NCBI GenBank assembly: GCA_038496445.1
Contig: JALMLS010000571.1
Coordinates: forward strand, 83,191 to 147,190
DNA length: 64,000 nt
Source of the DNA: Trichosphaerium sp. ATCC 40318
Taxonomy: Eukaryota > Protista > Tubulinea
Direction: 5' to 3'
Shown: positions 8,398 through 64,000 of the stretch, piece after piece
Numbering within the stretch: the stretch's first letter is position 1
How the letters are laid out: each line of letters starts with the position of its first letter
Notes under the pieces: model-generated
What the model saw: the letters and a program-made list of their open reading frames with translations, nothing else
Database searches by the model: none
What the model was told of the DNA's origin: nothing
Translations under genes and position numbers: made by a program

Positions 8398-10066
8398 TTA
8401 GCTGTCTTCTTCTGGAGCTTCGGTATCAGTATCCAAAAGGATGTCTTGAGTGGCTTGGGTCTCTTCAATTGGTGACTTTTCTTCTTCGCTCTCATCCGAG
8501 GACGAGTCATCTGAATCATCATCATCTTTTTCTTGAATGCCTTCATCGTCACTTGGTACGATTGGTTCTCCCTCATCTTGAGCAGCAATAACAACCTTCG
8601 AGAAATTACCCCTATACACGTGAATGAGCACGTGTTGTTTAATTCCAAAAATTGTGGTGCGCAAAAAAATCTTTTACGTACGACTTTTTCTTTCTGTTCA
8701 CAAAGAAAGTCATGTAAACTACCCATGCGACAATGGTTGCGATAGATATTAAAGTAGCTAGATAAAATATCAGTAGATGTCATATTTCTAATGCATACCA
8801 ATTACGACAATAACGACAACAGATACCTTAGCTGTAGCTTTTTCTTCGACCTATGATACCAAACGGTTAAAAATAAACTCATCAAAAAAAAAAATAACAA
8901 AACTAACCTCTTGGATTCCCAATGCGAGTGGGATACCTTCAGTGCTAATGATTTTAACGCCAGCTGATGCCAAAGCAGCATCATCAGCATCAGACAAACC
9001 AGCGACAGCATCGGAGATGACATAGGCGTCAAAAGAGAAAACTTTTGCGTCACTGGCAGTAGCGACAAGGCTCACACCACCAAGACCAACGATTAGAAGG
9101 GTGTTGATGCCTGCAGCCTAACGAAGAAGTTAGATATGACCAATATTCGAAGAGAACCGTACCTCCAAGTCGTTTTCAAGGGTAGTAAAGTTGAGGTGAG
9201 TGTTATCACGGAACGCGCTATCGGAACCTGTCGCGCACTCGATATTTTTCTTCATTATTACGTCACTTGGTTTTTGAATGAGTTGCTAGTAGAAATCAGT
9301 TTTAGAGGTTTTGTTTGCGGTTTATCTTTTTTTTGTGTATCACAAAAAAAAAAGATTCGGCTGTCTGGTTTAATACCTTTGAGAAATCAGATTCGGGCTG
9401 TCCAGCAACACAAGAATCTTCAAGAAGCTAAACACGTGAACGGTGAGTCGTAAAAGGTTTTCGGTGGTGATAAAACCGTACCACTTGAACTAATTTCTTG
9501 CCACGGCTAGCTGGATCAGCTGCTGGGCATGGGACAGTGTATTCTTGCTAAAGCAGATATTAATGGTAACGCGGCTAACTTTTGAAAAAAAAACGGCGAA
9601 AGCGCTTAGTTTCAAAAAAGCGGTTTGTATGGATGCGTACTTGGTTAATTTCAGATTCACAGAGTTGTCCGTGTGCGTTGTAAAATAGCTCAACCGAATC
9701 TCCGGGATTTTTGCCCACGTGAACAGAGGCAAACGATATGTGTGTTGAACACTTCCATTCCTAGAGAATGACGTTTTTGAGAAGAGAAAAAAACAGGGTA
9801 TCGTAAACCAACCAAGCGGTTATTCAAAACCTACGCACCTGCGTCAATACCACTCTGGTAAACTCGTAGTCGTATTTTGTTCTGATATCATTAATAGCGA
9901 GGATTACTTCGTCTCCTCCCTTCACGCCAGCTGCTCCTCCAGGGAGGCTACAGTACTGAGCGTCTATAACGATGAGAGCTGCTTTTGTCTCAGTTGCTTC
10001 AGCGGCCTCTTGAGAGGCAACGAAGCTTACAAATACAACCAAAATAAGCGCTAAGGAGATGTTCAT
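8398..10066 (-). CDS. Type-I membrane protein with signal peptide, nicotinamidase/isochorismatase-like ectodomain (catalytic residues lost), TM helix and acidic tail
   Basis: MNISLALILVVFVSFVAS; AALIVIDAQYCSLPGG; TQEWKCSTHISFAS; LLEDSCVAG; GINTLLIVGLGGVSLVATASDA; TM VSVVVIVVIATLISIATIVAWVVYMTFFV then NRKKK; Asp/Glu-rich tail. Confidence 0.8.
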
Positions 10067-10270
10067 TGATGCTGGCGATAGATAAAATGAGTGAGCACAC
10101 GACGGACATTTGGCATCTACTCCGAATAAATGCGACAAAATCTACCCGAGAACGTTGTTTATGGTATAAGGTTGTTTATTAAAAGGTATGGTTAATGTAA
10201 GCAACCATTCGTTGGACAAGATTCAAAAAATCTTTTTTTCAATTTTTTTTTTGTATTTTTCGAGTACGCT

Positions 10271-13200
10271 TTAGTCAAAATCGCTGTCTTCGCCATCGTC
10301 AGTAGCCGTTTCCAACTCGATTTCTTTACCGGTATTGCCACCACGGGCATTGCTAATAGCAATACATATAGCGCCTATTATACCAACAAGAACGATGCTG
10401 AGACCATAGCCAAGCAGAACGTAGGCGAATAAGAGTGTGCTTCTTGCTGCTTGTTGCTGGAACTCGATAAAACCGGATACCCAACGTTCTAGGGCACGAC
10501 GTAAGTACTAGGGACTACATATAATGAAAGTAAAGAAAACGTACGTAAAGTAACCGATGTGCTGATCGCCACTGAGTCAGGGATGTACAAGAACGTTGGT
10601 GCTCGTATGTACGGTGTAATATAAAGAGGATACAACTGTAAGTTATTTGCCATGTATCTACGCGTGTTAAAAGAGTTTTTGATGCTTTTAGAACGCAGTA
10701 GCTACGTACGTTAATACTTCCAGTATGGTTTCAACTCCCAAGATACATTGAGCGAGATCATTGAAAATAGTGGCAAGGAACGATACAGATTGAGCGCCAA
10801 GCTCGTCTCTAATGTACCTAGTGGCTAACTCCTCTGGCCAAGTTTCAGCCTTGTCCGCAACAACTTCAAGCCATCCTCGCGGTTTATTAAGAAAGTTGTC
10901 AATGTCGGAAGCCAAATTCACAACGGTCTACGCGCATAGATGTCAAAAAAAAAAATTGAGTTTTTTCAGGTTTGACGTACACCGTTGAATTCATCAGTCC
11001 ATTTACCGACAGTATCATTAATGAGGCCATTCCAAGCGTCAGATTGATCTTGAACAAAACCCTTTACTTCAATGTTGATCCAGGTGTTTGCTGTTGTTTC
11101 GATCAAGGACAGTTGCCAAACAAGTAGAAATACGAATACAATTGACAATATAGCCAACATGATAATCATTACAGCGGCAGGCCAACTGATGTATTCGAGG
11201 AACCACATGAGTGGTGAAACCTGTCCAGATTCAGCTGCTTTGCCTTCAAGCTTGCCTGAAAGCCAAGTTCTGAGGCGCAACATCTTTGAACGGACCCAAC
11301 GGCGAACACGTTTCCAGAAATACAGCCAAACAAATACCGCAATGATGCATATAACGATACCAATGAGGTAACCCATAAAGAGCCAGAGTAGTACATCTAC
11401 AGCCTCGTCGTAAGATCCGAATGGAAACTCGTGACAAAAAGTCACATTTTGATAAGTTAATACTGGGAATAGATCCACAGTAACATTTGGAATGGTGGCC
11501 CTAAGAAGGTTAGAATATTATCAGAAAAAGTCAAACACAAAAAAAAGTGAGTGTAGAACTCGAGTTGATCAACGGTAGTGGCGGCATTCGCTACGAAAAT
11601 AAAAGCATTGTTTGACCAATCCGCAGGGAAAAGTGTCGTACTGAAAGTCTGCAAGGGCACCATCTAAGAATTCTTCTCTGAGTGTTCTGATGATAAAATC
11701 AGATAATTCTCCATTTCCAAAATCAACAATGCTTGTTTTATTTCCTTCCAAGTCGTTTGTTGCACCTGAAGCGGCATTCTTAGATACATCTAGAACACCA
11801 CACATCTACGGAAAAGAAATGAGCTTTAGAACGCAACTTTGAATAAAAATTACGTCTTGTTTAAGTATTTCCCGTTGTGTTTCAGGAAGAGTAGCAATAT
11901 TATCCTTGAAACTGTTGACAAAATCTTGGATGCCAAACTGTTGAATATCACGCTTATTCCTCAAGCTATCAAAGTGGTTCTTGACTTGATCTTCCAAGAA
12001 TGAGTCGAACACAGCTGCACGTTTCTTTGCAATAGGTGCTGCAGTTGTTGGCGCTGTTGTTGTTGGTACAGCTGGAGCTTCAGTTGTTGGCACGGCTGGT
12101 GCTTCTGTTGTTGGTACTACTGGCGCTTCAGTCGTTGGAGCTACAGGAACTGTAGGTGCTTCAGTTGTTGGTACAACAGGAGGTGTAGGTCCAGTTGGAG
12201 GTACTGTAGTGTTCGTATTATTGTTGCTTGGAGGCTCAGGTGGAAAACAGAATTCATTGATAGTGTCAGAATCTATGTTCGATATCAATTGATCTAGCTC
12301 TGATACACTAACTGGCGTAAGCATTTCACAAACTCTTTTTTTAATACTCCCTGTTGGTAGACGTACCCATTCTCAACTACATTAACAGCAGCCTTGTAAG
12401 CACATATGTAGCTGTTAAACTTAAATTGTATCGCTCTTACAAGCAACTAAGGTACAGAATAAGTTCAAGTTGTGTACCAATAAAATGAATAGTAGAAAAC
12501 TCAAAAAGGATTTTTTTTTTAAGGCCGTACCGGGACAGCATAGTCCACTGTTGAGTTTACAATATCGTAACTTTCTTCTATGATTGTATTTAATAAGCTA
12601 GCAGCTTGTTCGTTCGCTTCTCGCGCAGCTATAACATGTAGATTGAATACATTCGATACTGCAACCTCCATAGATGTGCACGTCTCTCTCATTGAATCCT
12701 TGCTTCTGTTTGCATCACGATTAACAACTTGGAAAGTCAACACTGAAGCTGCCCTAAATTGAGATTGATTAAATGAGAAAACCAGATCTGCAGTAAACAA
12801 TATTTGAATTTCAAAAATCTGTGCCAGAAACCGGCAAAACTATTTACACAAATGTCCATAAAAAGACGAAAGGGAAAAAACCGTACAATAAAGTTAACAA
12901 GCCAGCAATGTACATGTGCCAAAACACTCTTGAATCTGCCCATCTTGACCCGATATACTTTGGGTGGACTGCCGAACAAAATTTTCCACTGCGCACTTTA
13001 CGCTTCTTCTTAACAACGACACGTTGTGGGCTTACTTGGTCCGCTTCAATTGTGACGACATCGTTACCTTTACCAGCGTGTTTTCTGCCATATCGCGGTA
13101 CAACATTTCTCTTGCGGCTGTCTTGAGATGCATGTAGATTTCCCATAGAGGGCAGCAAATGAGACTTGTTCTTGTCGAGTTTAGCCTCATGCTCCCCTCT

Positions 13201-13524
13201 GTCTCCTTCACTCCAATCACTATCCCAAGAGGCCTACTGCGCGTTAAGAAGTGTTTTTTCGGAGTACAAACTCGTTTTGGTGTAAGAACTTGTATAGGAC
13301 AAGTAGAAAATTGCAGTTTAAGGTGAGGACACTGTTTAGCCCGCGACGAGCGTTTTAAGGTTTTTTACTGCGTACGTTACTAGCGGCTCTCATAGGCCGC
13401 ATTTGCTCTTCCTCTAGGCTATTGTAGTTAATACAACATGTACGTTAGTAATCGTGAAAAGTACAATTACTGGTATTTGTTCGCACCTTGCACTCCTACT
13501 ACGCGTAGATGAACTCGTGCTCAT
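10271..13524 (-). CDS. Prm1-like multipass plasma-membrane fusion protein (5' exons above about 13230 uncertain)
   Basis: KYIGSRWADSRVFW..LLTLL; ETCTSMEVAVSNV; FNSYICAY; second hydrophobic pair ...FLEYISWPAAVMIIMLAIL; KWTDEFN; AQCILGVETILEVLTYMANNL; final TM LLFAYVLLGYGLSIVLVGII. Motif order resembles fungal Prm1. Confidence 0.7.
12036..12240 (-). repeat. Coding Pro/Thr-rich tandem repeat (PTTEAP x4, about 24-nt unit), mucin-like
   Basis: VPTTEAPTVPVAPTTEAPVVPTTEAPAVPTTEAPAVPTTTAPTTAAP in ORF 11806-12324. Confidence 0.9.
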
Positions 13525-13734: not shown

Positions 13735-15029
13735 TTAAAACACTGTTCTTATTGTGTCATAGTTATTTACAAGTTCGCGCAACATTTTAGCCACGTGTGG
13801 AACATTTTCTTGAATCTCTTGTTTCGTTGTGGAGCCTACCATCAAAGGTCCAAAAATAATTACTAAAGCAGCCAAAGAGTTGCTAGAATCGTCAATATTG
13901 CACAAAGCGTGTATTGTTGCTACTACACTCAGCAAAACAACGCGATTGTAGGCATCAATAGTGTCTAGGAATTGCTTCATAAACGTGGAGAGTGACATGT
14001 CAACCTTGTTTGTAACAAACGTTGTAAAATATGTCAACATGCGAAGAGGAATGATTGGTTCTCCCAATATCAGGAATTGTTTCAATACAGCTGCTACAGA
14101 ATGCACTGAATATTGACTCAGTTGTAAGTTAGCTGATTGAAAAAAACCTGTTAGTAAGGTGCCAAAGTACTTTGGTATAAGCGTACGTTTTGTGTGGTAT
14201 ATTTGCAATAGCTCAACTACTTCGCGATAACTAGTTACTATTAAATCAAAATCCTACAACGAGATGATCAGGCGTACACCCCAGGTTTTATAAACAAGCT
14301 TTCTGTACTGGCTAAGAACTACTTAGAAAGGGCGAGTACTATTAACACGAGGAAGCATACCGTGAGATTGTAAGTGAGCAAACAAACGGGTATAGTCATT
14401 TCCTTTATTCGGTTGAAGCGGTGGTACACCCACCTGTGGTTCGACTCTGGGCTAATCAGTTTGTTAACATGGCTTGCTTATTGCAACAGAGTAAATAACA
14501 AACCTTGAAGAATCTGGACTTGCTGAGTACTAGGACAGTGTCAGGTAATTTTATCATTTTTCTTTGACTTAAAAATCGTACGTGATTTGACATGACTGAC
14601 AGCGTTTGCAGGCTCCTTTATAAAAGTTGGTCTATTATTAACCTTTGGTGAACCAGCTGCAACTGCCTTTGTTTGAATTATATAGTATTGAGCTCTTGCA
14701 TTGAATGCCCTGTTTTTGAAGATTAAATACAAATAAGTAAAAGAAAAAGCAAGAAATCAAATACTCACTTTTCTGGATGCACTTCTACCTTAAGATATCC
14801 AGTTGCAACGCCATTATATGTGCTGTTTCCGAGGCTGGGATTACTAAACTTGAACGTTACTGTACTATGCCCTAAAGAGAGGATTTAGTTTGTAAACCCC
14901 TTCTTTTTTTGGAACAAACAATCAAAATGACCACGTGGTCTTGTAAAACGTACTTTTTCTGCTTATATCGAATGTTTGATATGTAACTACTCCTCTACAT
15001 CCAGAATCGATTTCAGGGTGAGCAGGCAT
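13735..15029 (-). CDS. RhoGAP-domain protein with the arginine finger replaced
   Basis: HLQSHASTESLFIKPG...HSVAAVLKQFLILGEPIIP...LAALVIIFGPLMV; ATG 15029; 3' end may extend. Confidence 0.72.
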
Positions 15030-29918: not shown

Positions 29919-30272
29919 ATGGCGAGAGCAAGAGCAGCTTCAAGGCTACCACCAGAGGTCAACAAAATCGTATACGTTAAGCGTTTGCCAGAGAAGATCA
30001 CTGCAGAAGAACTCTACGATGTATTCGGTAAATTCGGTGCTATACAACAAATAAGGCTCGGAAACAAGGCAGATACAAAGGGAACCGCTTTTGTAGTGTT
30101 TGAGGACATTTATGACGCCAAGAACGCTGTGGAACATCTCACTGGTTTTAACGTAGCTGGACGCTATATTACGTGTTTATACTACGACAGAAGCAAAATG
30201 GATACACGCATTGACATGAAGAAGAAACAAGCCGAAATTGATAGGCTCAAACAAAAATACAGCGTAGACTGA
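29919..30272 (+). CDS. SF3B6: Splicing factor 3B subunit 6 (p14), intronless CDS
   Basis: RLPPEVNKIVYVKRLP..ITAEELYDVFGKFGAIQQIRLG...KGTAFVVFEDIYDAKNA. Confidence 0.97.
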   Translation: MARARAASRLPPEVNKIVYVKRLPEKITAEELYDVFGKFGAIQQIRLGNKADTKGTAFVVFEDIYDAKNAVEHLTGFNVAGRYITCLYYDRSKMDTRIDMKKKQAEIDRLKQKYSVD

Positions 30273-33795: not shown

Positions 33796-33960
33796 TTCTA
33801 AATTTTATTTCAGCTTTGTGATTAGCGTCACAAAAATTGTACCACAATTATAAGTGATGACTGGCTATGTAAATAGAGAAAAAGAGGCGTCACGGCGGCA
33901 AGTCAAGCAAAATCTTGCCTGCTATTTTTTATTTTGTTTTTCCATCCCTATTTCGCAACA

Positions 33961-34689
33961 ATGGTAAAGTTGTAAGTATAATGCTGTTAACCGTATCGTG
34001 CTAACTCAGTACTTAGTTTAAAACCAGGTAAGGTAGTAATTGTAACCAGAGGCAGACACGCCGGTAGCAAAGCCGTAATTGTAAAAAACTACGAGCCAAG
34101 CGACTCTAAGCTCAATGCACCAACTTCATTGATTGTTGGACTTCAGAAATACCCAAAAAGTGTTTCTCAAAAGGTATGTTATGCCGCAATAGCATTGCGA
34201 GTATTCAAATCGCCGTATGAACGAGTCTAATTGGTCTATTCAAGATGAACTTGAAACAACTTGCTCGTCGCTCCCGACTCAAACCATACCTCAAAATGGT
34301 AAACCACCGTCACTTTATGCCAACCAGGTACAATTTAGAACTGGGAAGAAATAGTGAAAAATAACTGGCTATTGCAGGTATTCTTTTGATCTCGGCGTAC
34401 ACGAAAACACCGTTCAAAACATGGAGCGACCAGAAAAGAAAAAGGCCGTCAAACGTCACTTGAAGAAGGCCCTTAGCAAAAAGTACATGGCAGGACAAAA
34501 CAGATGGTTTTTCACCAAATTGAGGTGCGTAGGCGGAAAAGTACAAAAATTAAGGCGGAAATTTTGCAAATAACCAGGTTTCTTGCTTGTTTTCGTGGAA
34601 CCTCGTTGTTAAAGCAAGCCCGCGTTTTTATTTTGTTTTTGTTTGCAATTTGTGGACGTTATTTATTAATTTCAATGTACAGGTTCTAG
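33961..34689 (+). CDS. RPL27: 60S ribosomal protein eL27
   Basis: MVKFLKPGKVVIVTRGRHAGSKAVIV...KYP...NHRHFMPTRY...GQNRWFFTKLRF. Confidence 0.96.
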
Positions 34690-51774: not shown

Positions 51775-52896
51775 TCAATTTGAGCAACACCGCCTTGTAG
51801 AGAGTCAGCTATTATGCCATTCGAAGCGAATGTGGGATACCTGGATGATGGTTCTTGGGTTACTGCACTTTTGTTAAGCCGCACGCCACCGCGTGTTTCA
51901 TCTGGTAGCGTAGCGCCTTTAACAATGTTCTCTATTTGCGAACATGGTTAACAACATTGAAGAGGCCAACTTGTCATACCAACTAAAAATCCAAGTGCTT
52001 CTTCAATATTTTCGTTGTTTTTTGCGGATGTTACGAACCAACCTACCCCGCCGGTATTAGCACGTGTTTTGTGGGCGGGCAAGAAGAATTAACGAGTACC
52101 TGAATAGCCATGTGTAGATGCATAATGTTGTATCTCCTCCTCTGTAATACATGGCCTTACACCGCCTTCTTTGATCAAGTCGATTTTATTGCCTATGAGG
52201 ATGACTGGGATATTGTCATTGCTGTTTAGTTTAGATTCTAGATCCTTTTTCCACCTTTCCTGCATAGGTTTCTTTAATCTAGATTGGGTTTATCACTAAC
52301 GCACCACAGCTTCGAAAGTGTTGAGTCTTGTCATGTCGAAGACTACCTGAAGGTGCGTGCGAGTCAATACAAAAAAAACCAATGGCTATGCTGCGCACAA
52401 AAGCCCCGACAGCATCCTTGTAGTATATGCGCGTCATGCTTCCATATCTCTCTTGTGCCGCAATGTCCCACAGCTGCAAGTAAACACGCGTTTGTTCTAG
52501 ATCGACAACCTACACGCCAAGTTACACGGGGTTGTACACGTGCAAAACTAAGGTAATGTCATTTGGTTTTTTGGCAAAGTACCTTTAGCGCAAAATCTAC
52601 GCCTACTGTCGCTTTGTAGTTCTTGGAGAAGTTGTTGTTTACATAACGTTGAATGATAGACGTCTTTCCTAGTCGAAAAGGTAAATACGCAAGTTATTCG
52701 TGCGGTTAGGCACAGTTGCCACTCGACAAAACAACTCAAATTGAAAATAAAACAATGGCGAAAATTCCTAACCTGAGCCAGCGTTACCAACTGCCACCAC
52801 TTTAAACCTTTCGAGTCATTAACGGTTGCCAAGTAGGAGAGCTTTTTTTCTCTGTGCGTACCTGAGTTCTTTGGTGCCGTTCTGTTGCTCTGTCAT
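51775..52896 (-). CDS. RAB32: Rab32/38/Rab7L1-type small GTPase
   Basis: [64 protein letters not shown]-terminal RRCCSN. Confidence 0.85.
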
Positions 52897-55945: not shown

Positions 55946-58083
55946 ATGTTCATCCAGTTCTTCATTCTGTCGTTTAAAGGCGATTCGTTAATATTCAGAG
56001 ACTGTATCCTCCACCCTTTTTGGTATTAAACCACTCTATGATTCTTTTAAAGCCTTAACGTTACAGTTCGCCACTCAACACTAACCAACACCACTGAAAT
56101 ATTTTTTAAACATGCCAAAGACGCCAAAAAAGGTCCTGCCTTCGTACGTACATACCCTACGCCTGTAGTTTAGCCGGTTACAGCGTTAATGCCATCCAAT
56201 TGGCTAACGAGCATTTCTTAGGTAGTGGATGGCGTGTCATATATTTTTGCGCGTATTTGTGGCATGTACTTTGTTTTTGTAACAAATCGCAATGTTTCAC
56301 CTTGCATGTCCATTGCATTCCTGTCACGTATTGCACAGGTTATAAAAGATTACTGCGGAACGTTGTCAGAAGCAGTACGTTTCACGTAGGATTTTTGCAC
56401 GTCCTGTTGACTCTTGTAGGCAATCAGAGATAATTTTACACTGATATACGAGATTGTGGATGAACTTATAGACTTTGGTAACCCAGGCGTCACATTTTGT
56501 TTTGTTTTTTTCATCATTTGTGACGTACTGACCCCACTTGTTTGCAAACAGGTTACCCTCAGCTCGCAAAAACAGAGCTTATAAAACCATTCATTCACAA
56601 CGACCCAATAGCTAACCGATCAAAGCCAAAGGCAAGATCGATTATTGGAAAGAGGGTGAGTATAAATGTCAATTTCTCCTTTTATTTTTTTTCATCATGA
56701 TATTTGGTGACTTATCCCCGAATCTTGGATGTTGTTATTATTGATGAGACTAACTCGTTTGTTTGCAGTTGAATCAACAAAAGGTAGTGGCTTCTTCTAG
56801 TGCCAATAAGACGGTACTGAATAATCAAAATGACAATGAACTGTATCTGGATCTATACGAACATCTCACTGTCATTTTTGCTCAAGATGTGCGCCTTGGT
56901 TCTTTTGCGTTTGTTCCGTCGTGTTAGCACTAATCCTTCAATAGGGTACTACCACTAGAGCTGAAATTGATGGGTGTGTAACTATAAAGAGCTTCTTGCA
57001 TGGTAGTCCAGTCTTAAGAATTGGATTTAATGAGGATCTCATCATATCTCGTGACGAGTTACCAACCTTGGGTCATGGAGATACTGGTCCCGTTGTAATC
57101 AACGATTGTAGCTTCCACGAGTGTGTTTCTATGGATGGTTGGGAGAGGTACCGTTGTGCTTCCTACCTTTTTTTCCTGAGATCATCGCCGCCACGTCGAC
57201 ACTGACATTTGTTATAGCATGAGAGAGCTCACATTTGAACCTCCGGATGGTGAATTCCAAGTGATGAAATACCACATGACAGGCGGGTTTGTACCACCAT
57301 TTAGGGTATTCCCTTATATAGAGGTGGTGCATACTGACGCCATAGATGTTACCATAAAGGTATGCAGTTATTGGTTGTTTAATTGTACATACCGGGGCCG
57401 TTTCTAAGAGCGTAATTGCACCAACATAGGTTCGTGCCGACTTTCCGAAAAAGAACTTTGCAAACGAGATGAGGATTTCGTGCAAGATGCCAGTATCCAC
57501 CGTAAGGTATGTTGCATATTGCTTTTTACCTTTGTGTTGATGAGCATAATCGGCGCTAGACAAGATGTGTTTGTTAACCTTGTTGCAATAGTGCTTCTGT
57601 AGAGCTTGACAAAGCAAGTTCGTCTAACCAACGGAGCGAGTACATTGAAGAAGAGCACAAGGTGGTCTGGCACATTACTAAATTTTTTGGCGGCAGCGAG
57701 CATTCTTGCAAGATAAAACTAAATCTTGCTACTGGCACCAAGGGCTCTCCTCAAAACGAGATTGGTCCTGTCAAGTGCGCTTCAACTTTTGTGGTTGTGG
57801 TTATGCTCACATTGAATTTTAGTTTGGACTTTGAGATTCCCATGTTGTCTTGCTCCAAGTTACAAATCAGGTACATTTTTCACTTTTTTTTTTGATAGTA
57901 CGACTAATGTAACAAAGATACTTGCGCGTGGCGGACGGAAACGCATCACCTTATAGATGGGTCCGTGCCATTACAAAAACGAACTCGTACACTGTGCGAC
58001 TGGGTCAAGGCGCTGCCAAAGACAAATACCCTCCTAGAGGCAGCCTATATAGTCAAAATGCTTACGGAAGTGCCATGTACTAG
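55946..58083 (+). CDS. AP4M1: AP-4 adaptor complex mu subunit
   Basis: MFIQFFILSFKGDSLIFRDFR, YEIVDELIDFG.PQ, KSFLHGSPVLRIGFNEDL, DCSFHECV, FEPPDGEF.VMKY, YRWVR. Confidence 0.9.
56004..56066 (+). other. U12-type (minor spliceosome) GT-AG intron
   Basis: 5' GTATCCT, branch-site GCCTTAAC at 56052-56059 just upstream of the 3' CAG; removal restores FRD-F-R. Confidence 0.8.
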
Positions 58084-59916: not shown

Positions 59917-62206
59917 TCAATTCTCATCTTCATCCTGTGCACGTTTCACGTCAATGCAGTGCGTTGCATTGCACAACAAACCTCTTAGATTCCAAATGAC
60001 ATTACAGTCCGTTGGTTGACTGTTGTAGCTCGAGTCTACAGCCCTCACACAGATCTTAAAGTCCTGTTGGTCCAGTGGTATTGGAATGTCTGCCTCCCTA
60101 TTACACCTCTCAGAACAAATGCTACTTACTTGACAATAAATGGGGTAACGTACCACAATGACCAAGCCCACGTTTTACCTCGTGGTTGTGGCACCTTCTT
60201 TAGATCGGCATTCTCCCAATCAGCGCCTTGTACACCTACATCTACGCGTACAATCTCGCGACCTCCTCCACTGTACGAGTAGCCCTTAACGGTCAAGTAT
60301 TCATCATCCTTGTCGATCACAAAGTTTGTAGGCGGCTCTGTGATGGCAGATTGTACAGGTAGCTCTTGAATTGACGGTCCAGGTGGCGCCTCTGCGCTTG
60401 TATCCCAGTCAATGCGTGGTGCGTACAACTTGTAGTCCTTTTGCTGCCAAAAGCTGTCGCTCTCCTCATCGCTGACAGTGACATGAGATAACTGCACAAC
60501 ACGGATTATTAGTTAACTAACTCACACACTTTCTAGAAAAAAAAAAAAACCGCAGCAACCGTACCCATTTAACGTTGCGGCACCCAACATGTCCTGGCAC
60601 AACCACACGTAACGGGAAACCATGATCTAATGGTAGCTGTTCGCCATTCATCTCTAGCGCCACAATAACGTCTCCATCATCGCTTAGGGCTTTGCTAAAG
60701 GAAGGTACATGTGTCAACTCGATGCTTGCACAGTACGACAACAAGTACAAAATAAGAATGCCTTACTTGATCGGAATAGATGCACCGTATGGAATATTTT
60801 CAGGGTCCGTGTCTAACCCTTTGAATTGAACGTGTTGCCTGCTTCGTGTTGCATTTGATATACCTGCCAAGTAACCCGCATTAATGTGTGTGGCTGGGTC
60901 ATCATGCACCCACTAGGTAGTAGTAGGCACAGACGTACCAACGTATTTCAGGATATCTGCTAGCCGCACGCCTCTCCATGTTGCCGTAGAAATTGCACCA
61001 ATATCCCACTGGGTGCCTAACAGTCTTGTCATTAGTTTGAAGCGAGCACATATGTGTTAGCTGGTTTGGTTGGTGATTACCTCGTGTTTCTTTTGCGCCT
61101 GACAAGTCTTTTCTGCGGTTGCCAGCGCACTGTACTGTGGAAGTGACTTCCACCAGTGGAAATTTATCACGCAGTTCCTCTAATGTAAAGGTAGCGGTCT
61201 TGATGTCATCTCCTGACACTTGCAGTTTGAAATTTTGAATGTCTACAACCGGCACAGGAAGGTGGTTTCGCACAAAGAATAGGTCATTTGGCGTAATAAG
61301 GTTGTCTGCTAGAAGTGCTCGGGGCGTTTCTGCATTAAATGGCTTTGGTGTGTGCACCTTTTGCAGTGAGTGAGTATACCAATGGGATATTGCAGCTTTT
61401 TAGTCATTTTGCGGCCGTATGAGTTTGTCCACGTGCGAAAAAAGCCGCAACATATTTCAAAATATAGGCGTACCCTGAGTGCGGGGTGGCGGCTTGGATC
61501 GTTTGCGTATGGGTCATTTACATCGGTTACGGTATCGGTTGGCGCCTCGGCGAGTGTACCAATACGAAGGGTTGAAAGCAACTCCAGCGTGTCTGCAGTG
61601 TTGTGTGCTGCATACATGCGCCAAAAGGGCTCGATAGATGCTCCTACAACGAGTCACGAATAATTTTTTTGGGTATTGGTCAATGAATCATTGTGGTAGC
61701 GTGTGTCATGTCAAATTTACCTGCTGCCAATAATATCTTACTGCCTCCTGGATGCATTTCAATAAATTCTGTCACGTCGTACACGCCTTGCTTGTACGTT
61801 ACCCAAATGCCTGTATCTGGTGATGTGTGAGCTGCGACATGAGCAAGCGTGTAAATTGGGTAGTCTTCTTTTTCTGAATTATCGTTTTCGCTTTTAACGC
61901 TGTTTGTGGTATCTGTGTCTGCGCTATCTTCGGCTGCTGAATCCAAGAAACCTGTTGTCAACCACATTGCCAGCGACGAAAGTACGATCGCTCCAGCGCC
62001 AATGGCGTATGATGAGACCACTTCTGCGCAAATAAGTTGAAGTTACATTTGATTTTTTTTAGCGACGTACTACGAGGCTCCCGGTGTAATGAATGTACAT
62101 TTCGCCTGTAAGTGGTGCGAGTATGTGATGATTGCTGTTTGTAACGTGAATCCCTTCTTGCATGTAATTGGCGTGCAGTACTCTTGTTAAGCACTTGTCG
62201 TAGCAT
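59917..62206 (-). CDS. SUOX: Mitochondrial sulfite oxidase (cytochrome b5 + Moco + dimerisation domains)
   Basis: Presequence; [14 protein letters not shown]; PFNAETP; [10 protein letters not shown]; QCAGNRR; [12 protein letters not shown]; [10 protein letters not shown]; GYSYSGGGR; IWNLRGL. Confidence 0.95.
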
Positions 62207-62428: not shown

Positions 62429-64000
62429 TTTTTTTTTTTTTTTTTTTTTTTTTCAAAAAAAGGTGGGTTTATTGTGCTGTGGACGACAATAACCACACAT
62501 GCAATTGGGTTACATTAGGTTTTTACAAATCAAAATATGGATCTTCATCCCATTTATCTGAACTTTCATATTTGAGTAATAGTTGTGTTTTTTCCTTTTA
62601 TTCCTAATAATGGGGGTTAAGTGGTTAGTAATTGAATTAATATAAGTGTTTTAGAAGGTGTGGTTGGTAAGGAAGGAGGTTTAGGTGGAGGAGGTAAGCC
62701 TGCACCCCAATCTTTCCAGGTATCAGTGATATCTGCCAACCGAAATTACCAACATAAGTGAATTTTTCTTCATCTGGAGGATTTTCACACTGTGAGTTGT
62801 CAATGTTGAGTGCAACAAGAATATTTTGTTGATGCCAGAAGAGGACTTTGTGAACGACTGGAGTTACTTCATCATGGAGAAGAGAGTTGCAACACTTCCA
62901 AATGCAATGCATAATGAAGCTGATGTGAATGGCTTTTTTTTTGTTAATGGTTAGCTTAAAAGTGTTAAAAGACCAGGAGAATAAGAAGGATGAAATGTGT
63001 TTGATGAGCATACTACCTATAGCATTAGCATATTTCCATTCAAAAAATAGACAATGACAGTGTAGTGGATACATGACATCAATGTTTGACAAAAAGGAGC
63101 TTTAGCAGATATCTCCAAAGAATATCTCTAGGTTTGTTGACTCTTCTAAGCTTACTGACAGACTTGAGCATAAGATGAACTTTCCAGCCTAAATCTATCA
63201 TTGCTTGGAGAGTAGGTGGCCAGTGAACCTGGTTGGGAGTAGGGGTATTATGTTTGACAATGTCAGAGACTTTGACATAGGTTTGATTAGGAGGAATTTT
63301 TACACCACAACCTAATTTGAGCCATTGGTCATGGCAATAATTTCCTATTTCAGAAAGACTAGATTCCCAGAGATCAAAATACAGTGTGATTGTGTTGAGG
63401 TGCCTAAACCAAAGAGAAGCTTTAAAATTGTCAGCTATGGTGGAGATATCAGGGATAGACAGCTCACCCAAGTGGAAAGGGAGAGCAGTCCTAGAACCTA
63501 AGGAAGAACGATAAGTGTGGTTGTTATTGTAGACTTTGGAAACATTGTTAGCACTGTCATAATATCCATAAAACATGAACCAGTTGACAATGTTACGCCA
63601 TAGCTTATCGATACACAAAGGTATTTGCAGAGGTTTAGCAAAATATAAGATACGTGATTGGGCATATGTCCTGAGTATTGAGTGCTTGGCCTTGAGAGTC
63701 CTAGCATAGGGTTTCCATAAGTTCAGAGACTTGATGATACCGTCAATTGCCTTATGAAAGTTGAAGGTGAGAGAGTTACCTGGTGACAGATCAAAGCCTA
63801 AGTATTTAGTAATAGAAGCAGGGGAAAGTACTTGTTTTATATCTTTGACAACGTTAATTTGAAAGCACTTGGCTTTGTTCAAGAATAATCCAGATGCTTT
63901 AGAGTAATTGTTAATCATATCTAGGCAGAGTGTAATATCAGAGGTGGATGAGGAGTTAGTAATGCGTTTTGTCAGCAAAGAAGATTTGTTTGAGGAGAAG
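62429..64000 (-). mobile_element. 3' part of an L1/Tx1/TRE-like non-LTR retrotransposon with poly(A) tail; frameshifted
   Basis: RT C-terminal motifs SKASGLFLNKAKC and KYLGF, intronless; T25 at 62429-62453 and an AATAAA signal at about 62468-62473 on the minus strand; stop and frame change near 63080. Confidence 0.88.

Follow-up and report, generated by a model that had tools for sequence, protein, structure and literature searches.

The minus strand of a 64,000-nucleotide stretch of eukaryotic DNA (contig JALMLS010000571.1; the whole stretch is called the window below) carries, between positions 13524 and 10271, an intact gene that, once spliced, probably encodes a very divergent PRM1-family protein (PF27758), predicted to be a four-pass plasma-membrane glycoprotein that would promote fusion as yeast Prm1p does. 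Among the conserved factors that act when membranes merge in fungal mating, Prm1 is the best known, and its mechanism is unsolved. A survey of sex genes regards PRM1 as opisthokont-only (PMC5892394), and PRM1 has been placed among fungal novelties, with domains at least 99% fungal (PMC10406608); Prm1 is a candidate fusion mediator in fungi without HAP2 (PMC11603280). Because the literature treats PRM1 as fungal or opisthokont-only, a nonfungal homologue would be noteworthy. The host of the gene reported here is likely nonfungal.

Gene and encoded protein

The gene model was built by three-frame reading of the minus strand (13524..10271) and joining of open frames at GT..AG junctions, giving 11 exons, 10 introns, and a coding sequence of 2400 nucleotides (nt; 799 amino acids [aa]) that is open throughout. 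The model was rebuilt independently, and its start and stop codons fall exactly on the limits (10271-13524) given by an initial annotation made from the letters of the window. All 10 introns are GT..AG and 48 to 142 nt long, with the donor GTACG in 7/10 and the acceptor TAG in 9/10, and codon usage in the exons is that of the neighboring genes.

The largest exon (exon 8, 173 aa) served as the query of an exhaustive phmmer search over 1.84 billion representative proteins, which matched one relative, P0001 (801 aa; E value, 7.7e-11). P0001 derives from JGI transcript Ga0186627_100778 (sample 3300016894), a 2477-nt polyadenylated contig without introns (GC content, 40%). It apparently stems from a marine-protist culture transcriptome, as the JGI series includes MMETSP marine-protist cultures; another member of the Ga0186xxx series, also in MMETSP, shares 99% identity with a protein of Emiliania huxleyi. 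P0001 and the window protein are colinear throughout (identity, 28% over 669 columns; BLASTP E values, 5.8e-30 and 1.1e-15), almost equal in length, and alike in their transmembrane (TM) spacing and four cysteines, whereas P0001 lacks a Pro/Thr-rich insert and has a longer, acidic/Ser-rich N-terminal tail. Both P0001 and yeast Prm1p carry the precomputed annotation PF27758:PRM1; since the Pfam model already recognizes P0001, databases would implicitly hold such a nonfungal extension of the family already, and these comparisons support the window protein as a putative new, very divergent member of it. Seven exon translations and P0001, scanned with a Pfam copy without PF27758, gave sub-threshold noise only, and a word-indexed protein search with P0001 matched P0001 alone.

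For the fungal profile, a degenerate DNA pattern of RLSQ[IV]W[ILF]N[RK][WY]T, a motif of fungal Prm1 used purely as a probe, was scanned over a metagenome collection. This gave 120 loci, ~115 of which were genuine Prm1-type open reading frames (ORFs); one of these (L098:2230-4212:-) is the 661-aa Saccharomyces cerevisiae Prm1p itself (plasma membrane fusion protein PRM1). The profile comprised 35 metagenomic Prm1 ORFs with <60% mutual identity, among which invariance of the N-terminal motif is circular, the motif being the retrieval probe. The 90%-identity cluster of yeast Prm1p also holds, as its representative, the 1060-aa product of the next gene, Caf120p, which looks like a clustering artifact.

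Against this profile, hhalign matched the window protein alone at 97.0% probability (P value, 9.3e-11; 526 columns), P0001 alone at 95.5%, and the two combined at 98.8% (P value, 8.5e-17; 527 to 576 columns), compared with 0.2 to 4.5% (P values, 0.009 to 0.29) for the reversed fungal alignment used as a control. In a second profile-profile run, exon 8 alone scored 91.9% (P value, 7e-7) and P0001 scored 93.6%. With Pezizomycotina Prm1 (metagenomic ORFs, e.g., L100, L094, and L014), which is 25 to 33% identical to yeast Prm1p, the hhalign alignment extends from TM1 through TM4; PYLGLRARLSQ[IV]W[ILF]N[RK]WT is invariant there, with the same circularity of retrieval. The Prm1-likeness noticed in the initial annotation is thus borne out by a significant profile match over nearly the full length with collapsing reversed controls, by aligned extracellular cysteines, by the same four-TM prediction, and by the Pfam PRM1 annotation of P0001.

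Hydropathy predicts four TM helices (TM1, aa 130-153; TM2, 486-508; TM3, 553-577; TM4, 749-772). The N-terminal tail and the TM2-TM3 loop carry net charges of +11 and +7, the two large loops carry −24 and −11, and 9/11 N-glycosylation sequons lie within the two large loops. By hydropathy, the positive-inside rule, and the sequons, the N terminus, the TM2-TM3 loop, and the C terminus are predicted to be cytosolic and the two large loops extracellular, as in yeast Prm1p.

When the window protein and P0001 were added to the fungal alignment, yeast C55, C120, C277, and C545 aligned with C168, C232, C472, and C684 of the window protein and with C274, C338, C493, and C694 of P0001. The window protein matches all four of these extracellular cysteines conserved in fungi; a fifth fungus-conserved cysteine (yeast C436) is absent from it. 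The columns of C120 and C545, occupied in the window protein by C232 and C684, hold Cys in 35/35 fungal sequences. In yeast, C120 (extracellular loop 1) and C545 (loop 2) form the intermolecular disulfide of the active Prm1p dimer and are needed for fusion activity (PMC2868043). The hydrophobic stretch before C232 is also present (VDYAVPLLVRAIQF).

Every motif of the initial annotation was found, in the order stated: YIGSRWADSRVFW (aa 120-132, running into TM1), ETCTSME (166-172), SYICAY (229-234), YISWPAAVMII (553-563, the start of TM3), NTWINIEV...LINDT (588-612), QCILGVETILEVLTY (683-697), and the last TM (749-772). The N-terminal spacing needed correction from Y.G.R..S..W to Y.G.R...S...W, one residue longer than the fungal Y.G.R...S..W, and the hhalign register places PKYIGSRWADS of the window protein opposite fungal TPYLGLRARLS. 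Yeast Prm1p (YNL279W, 661 aa, PF27758) and the window protein share the order of their four predicted TM helices, a pair of large extracellular loops, and the motifs CTS.E, Y.C, FC, W..Y.....A, and C.IG...LT[WY] in register; unlike yeast Prm1p, the window protein begins with a basic tail of 130 aa and carries Pro/Thr-rich repeats inserted into loop 1, and its gene has ten introns.

The gene as a whole (10271..13524, minus strand) is colinear with the 801-aa P0001, and the following exons are all on that strand. The first 27 aa (exons 1 and 2, 13524-13487 and 13418-13376) are tentative, resting on an open frame and GT-AG junctions; they lack homology support because the N-terminal tails of the window protein and P0001 are disordered and unrelated. 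Exon 3 (13233-12887; tblastn against P0001, E value of 8e-5, and hhalign register) encodes the basic cytosolic N-terminal tail and YIGSRWADSRVFW (12957-12919) and runs halfway through TM1. Exon 4 (12753-12531) completes TM1 and opens extracellular loop 1, where ETCTSME lies (12686-12666; C168, the counterpart of yeast C55). The junction of exons 3 and 4 was ambiguous by eye and was chosen because 35 residues then lead from the Trp of TM1 to the first Cys, versus 34 in P0001. Exon 5 (12446-12367), placed by column alignment, holds the hydrophobic stretch and SYICAY (12413-12396) with C232, the counterpart of the yeast dimerization cysteine C120. Exon 6 (12307-11854) covers the variable middle of loop 1 with its Pro/Thr-rich (VPTTEAPA-type) mucin-like insert (12246-12031), made up in part of 24-bp tandem repeats (12059-12148; Tandem Repeats Finder) and absent from P0001 and fungal Prm1. 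An antisense ORF (11990-12289, plus strand) is only the mirror image of this insert.

Exon 7 (11805-11642) encodes distal loop 1 and is bounded by a TAG acceptor and a GTACG donor at 11641; its junction with exon 8, also ambiguous by eye, was settled because this donor restores the frame and the register with P0001. Exon 8 (11500-10981), the largest, was supported by phmmer, hhalign, hydropathy, and charge, and contains VTFCHEF (11445-11425; C472, the counterpart of yeast C277), TM2 (11394-11326), the basic cytosolic loop (11325-11194), TM3 (11193-11119), and NTWINIEV...LINDT (11088-11014). Exon 9 (10927-10706) encodes extracellular loop 2 with QCILGVETILEVLTY (10750-10706), which includes C684, the counterpart of the other yeast dimerization cysteine, C545; the donor of intron 9, chosen without homology support, is tentative. 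Exon 10 (10635-10545) completes loop 2 with LYPLYITPYIRAPTFLYIPDSVAISTSVTL, its frame set by splice phase and by likeness to PLIAKIPDTVLPDTFSLPAIPTVSE of P0001, and exon 11 (10488-10271) encodes TM4 (10426-10355), the acidic cytosolic tail, and the stop codon.

AlphaFold models of P0001, as a relative of the window protein (predicted local distance difference test [pLDDT], 60 overall and 80 to 92 in the core), and of yeast Prm1p (pLDDT, 64.5) are all-helical, with TM helices that run on into long extracellular helices. Foldseek comparison of the P0001 model with PDB and viral structures gave nothing significant (best E values, 0.03 and 0.002; TM-scores mostly <0.2), the matches being generic long helical bundles that included ClyA-type toxins and chemoreceptors, and a PDB sequence search found no relative.

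The splice signals of the Prm1-like gene are unusual. GTACG is commoner than expected across the whole window (162 versus ~97), despite the CpG inside it. In the same window, the donors of the RPL27 gene are GTAAGT and GTATGT, not GTACG, and the GTACG consensus differs from both the GTATG of diplonemids and the GTGTG of Euglena. A scan for bacterial-type promoters and terminators gave background levels and is irrelevant for a eukaryotic gene.

Proposed function

Since the topology and both dimerization cysteines are conserved, the most likely reading of the window protein is a disulfide-linked surface dimer that would promote membrane merger. By analogy with yeast Prm1p, both of its large loops, acidic and mostly helical, would lie outside the cell, with the lineage-specific mucin-like insert in loop 1, and a C232/C684 disulfide would join two copies in a covalent homodimer placed at cell-contact sites. 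This dimer would promote the orderly merger of apposed plasma membranes, either in gamete fusion or in fusion of somatic cells or pseudopods of the host. Yeast Prm1 is pheromone-induced. Its activity requires the covalent dimer (PMC2868043). The plasmogamy or cell-cell fusion role proposed in the initial annotation is thus a candidate role drawn from homology. The gamete fusogen HAP2/GCS1 shares with the window protein a candidate role in gamete plasma-membrane fusion. HAP2 is described as a class II fusion protein that crosses the membrane once and has much beta structure (PMC5332557), an architecture unrelated to the four-pass, all-helical one predicted here.

Several observations weigh against a fusion-promoting Prm1. 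The window protein is ~16% identical to fungal Prm1 proteins, hmmsearch with the fungal hidden Markov model scored it at 16 bits with strong composition bias, and phmmer with exon 8 reached no fungal Prm1 among the 1.84 billion proteins searched. Because hmmsearch was weak and the single-exon phmmer search missed fungal Prm1, homology rests on profile-profile comparison, which supports a remote relationship visible at profile level only. The column of yeast E104, Glu in 31/35 fungal sequences, is Val in both the window protein and P0001; that of yeast D112, mostly Asn in fungi, is Gln in the window protein and Ser in P0001, and mutation of D112 in yeast Prm1p blocks dimerization. The N-terminal RLSQxWxN is kept in part only, with Y, G, R, and S in register (YIGSRWADS) and Q, W, N, and T lost in the hhalign alignment; the fungal RLSQxWxNxxT is reduced to SRVFWHMY. 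Finally, yeast Prm1p is itself no established fusogen, and even in yeast its mechanism is therefore ill-defined.

Conservation of structural features alone, with the charged residues beside the C120 equivalent not kept, would suit a true Prm1 homologue that has another role here, such as plasma-membrane organization, repair, or adhesion, fusion being a fungal specialization. The mucin-like insert, unique to the window copy, is typical of adhesion and surface-coat proteins, and yeast Prm1 is portrayed in PMC2063940 as a facilitator, a substantial fraction of mutant pairs, not all, failing to fuse. We nevertheless consider another role unlikely, as Prm1 of both S. cerevisiae and Cryptococcus is described as acting in fusion (PMC2185589, PMC5720818) and the window protein keeps both dimerization cysteines.

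Host lineage and neighboring genes

The window is compact (~200 bp between genes around the Prm1-like gene) and intron-rich. Pfam identified a RhoGAP protein, VPS45, the 2-oxoacid dehydrogenase E2 subunit, and sulfite oxidase; homologue and PDB searches identified SF3B6, eL27, and a Rab32/Rab29-like GTPase; and PNKP, eIF2B, EMC1, SSU72, POLR1C, and an AP mu subunit were recognized from the translated window sequence alone. Scans for tRNA genes and Rfam families were empty, a search with the EMC1-like exon gave no matches, and an exact look-up of one ORF of the window found no record.

SF3B6/p14 (29919-30272, plus strand) is a complete single-exon gene of 117 aa and the most divergent of 122 sequences compared (best identity, 70%, versus a median of 92% to the best partner for the others), which suggests a fast-evolving host lineage. 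Its best 120 matches are from protists, animals, and plants, with Glaucocystis, Paraphysomonas, Octactis, Rhizochromulina, Emiliania, Trichoplax, Pelomyxa, Mastigella, and Lapot among those named. Because the host sequence is so divergent, this match list mainly reflects slow-evolving sequences, and the SF3B6 tree is uninformative because the host sequence is its longest branch. The eL27 (RPL27) gene (33950-34570, plus strand) has at least 4 exons, three of which, compared with PDB ribosomes, gave summed scores of 121 bits for 6zj3_Ln, 104 to 110 for trypanosomatid chains, ~103 for yeasts, and ~94 for mammals; plant chains also rank behind 6zj3_Ln and the trypanosomatid chains. The chain 6zj3_Ln belongs to the Euglena gracilis ribosome; as eL27 is short, this ranking may be a weak hint of host affinity.

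The initial annotation had suggested a protist host from AP-4 mu and Rab32-type neighbors. The Rab gene (51800-52700, minus strand; WDIAAQERY in place of WDTAGQE) does have Rab32 among its best PDB matches, with Ypt51 and Rab7L1/Rab29, whereas the AP mu-like exon (57578-57892, plus strand) had no PDB match at an E value of 0.01, so that AP-4 is a tentative assignment. A nonfungal host is nevertheless likely: phmmer returned no fungal match, P0001 comes from a series with marine-protist cultures, and neither SF3B6 nor eL27 shows fungal affinity, with the limits that SF3B6 is fast-evolving and eL27 short.

Were the host an unsampled early-diverging fungus or a close relative (Holomycota), the gene would be an ordinary fast-evolving fungal Prm1 orthologue without taxonomic novelty. 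AP-4 mu and Rab32-type genes would rule out Dikarya only, and short introns, compact spacing, and a GC content of 40% fit many zoosporic fungi. With an SF3B6 so divergent, the lack of fungi among its best matches may be a long-branch effect, and the yeast eL27 chains fall only ~18 bits short of the top-scoring one over the three summed exons. We consider such a host unlikely, given that the search of 1.84 billion proteins yielded no fungal protein and a sole relative from the series with MMETSP cultures, that 0/120 best SF3B6 matches are fungal, and that 6zj3_Ln and then trypanosomatid chains precede the fungal ones for eL27.

Horizontal transfer of the Prm1 gene from a fungus into a protist lineage would fit a family regarded as a fungal novelty (PMC10406608) and patchy elsewhere, with one relative among 1.84 billion proteins. 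It is very improbable here: the low identity to fungal proteins, the ten host-type introns, the codon usage shared with neighboring genes, and the mere 28% identity between the two protist copies all argue for long residence. A resemblance that unrelated multi-pass membrane proteins owe to chance or composition, for which the low, highly biased hmmsearch score and the lack of a significant structural neighbor might speak, is close to refuted by the reversed-profile controls (0.2 to 4.5%), by a match of >500 columns that includes nonmembrane loops, by four cysteines and motifs in register, and by the independent Pfam PRM1 annotation of P0001.

The Prm1-like gene is flanked at ~200 bp, on the same (minus) strand, by an isochorismatase/nicotinamidase-like gene with a signal peptide (8854-10141) and by the RhoGAP gene (13738-14253). 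The sulfite oxidase gene (60129-62042, minus strand) has a Mo-binding domain by Pfam, and its first exon (61683-62042) resembles, by eye, an N-terminal cytochrome b5 domain; an N-terminal cytochrome b5 in sulfite oxidase is the animal-type domain order. A 306-aa open frame (63082-63999, minus strand) reaches the window edge and resembles the C-terminal part of a non-long-terminal-repeat retrotransposon reverse transcriptase, without a Pfam match.

Significance

It is possible, and we put this forward tentatively, that Prm1 is not a fungal invention and is instead an older eukaryotic cell-fusion factor that survives, very divergent, in scattered protist lineages, namely this host and at least one marine-culture organism. 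If the host is nonfungal, the origin of the Prm1 family would be pushed back, and its minimal conserved core would shrink to the TM helices and extracellular cysteines, four of each, along with some short motifs, making the disulfide-linked helical ectodomain a target for study. The gene would also be a candidate fusion gene for protists without known plasmogamy genes. If Prm1 is indeed an older eukaryotic factor, it would be a second conserved membrane-fusion component besides HAP2 outside fungi and would offer a deep comparative framework for the mechanism of Prm1.

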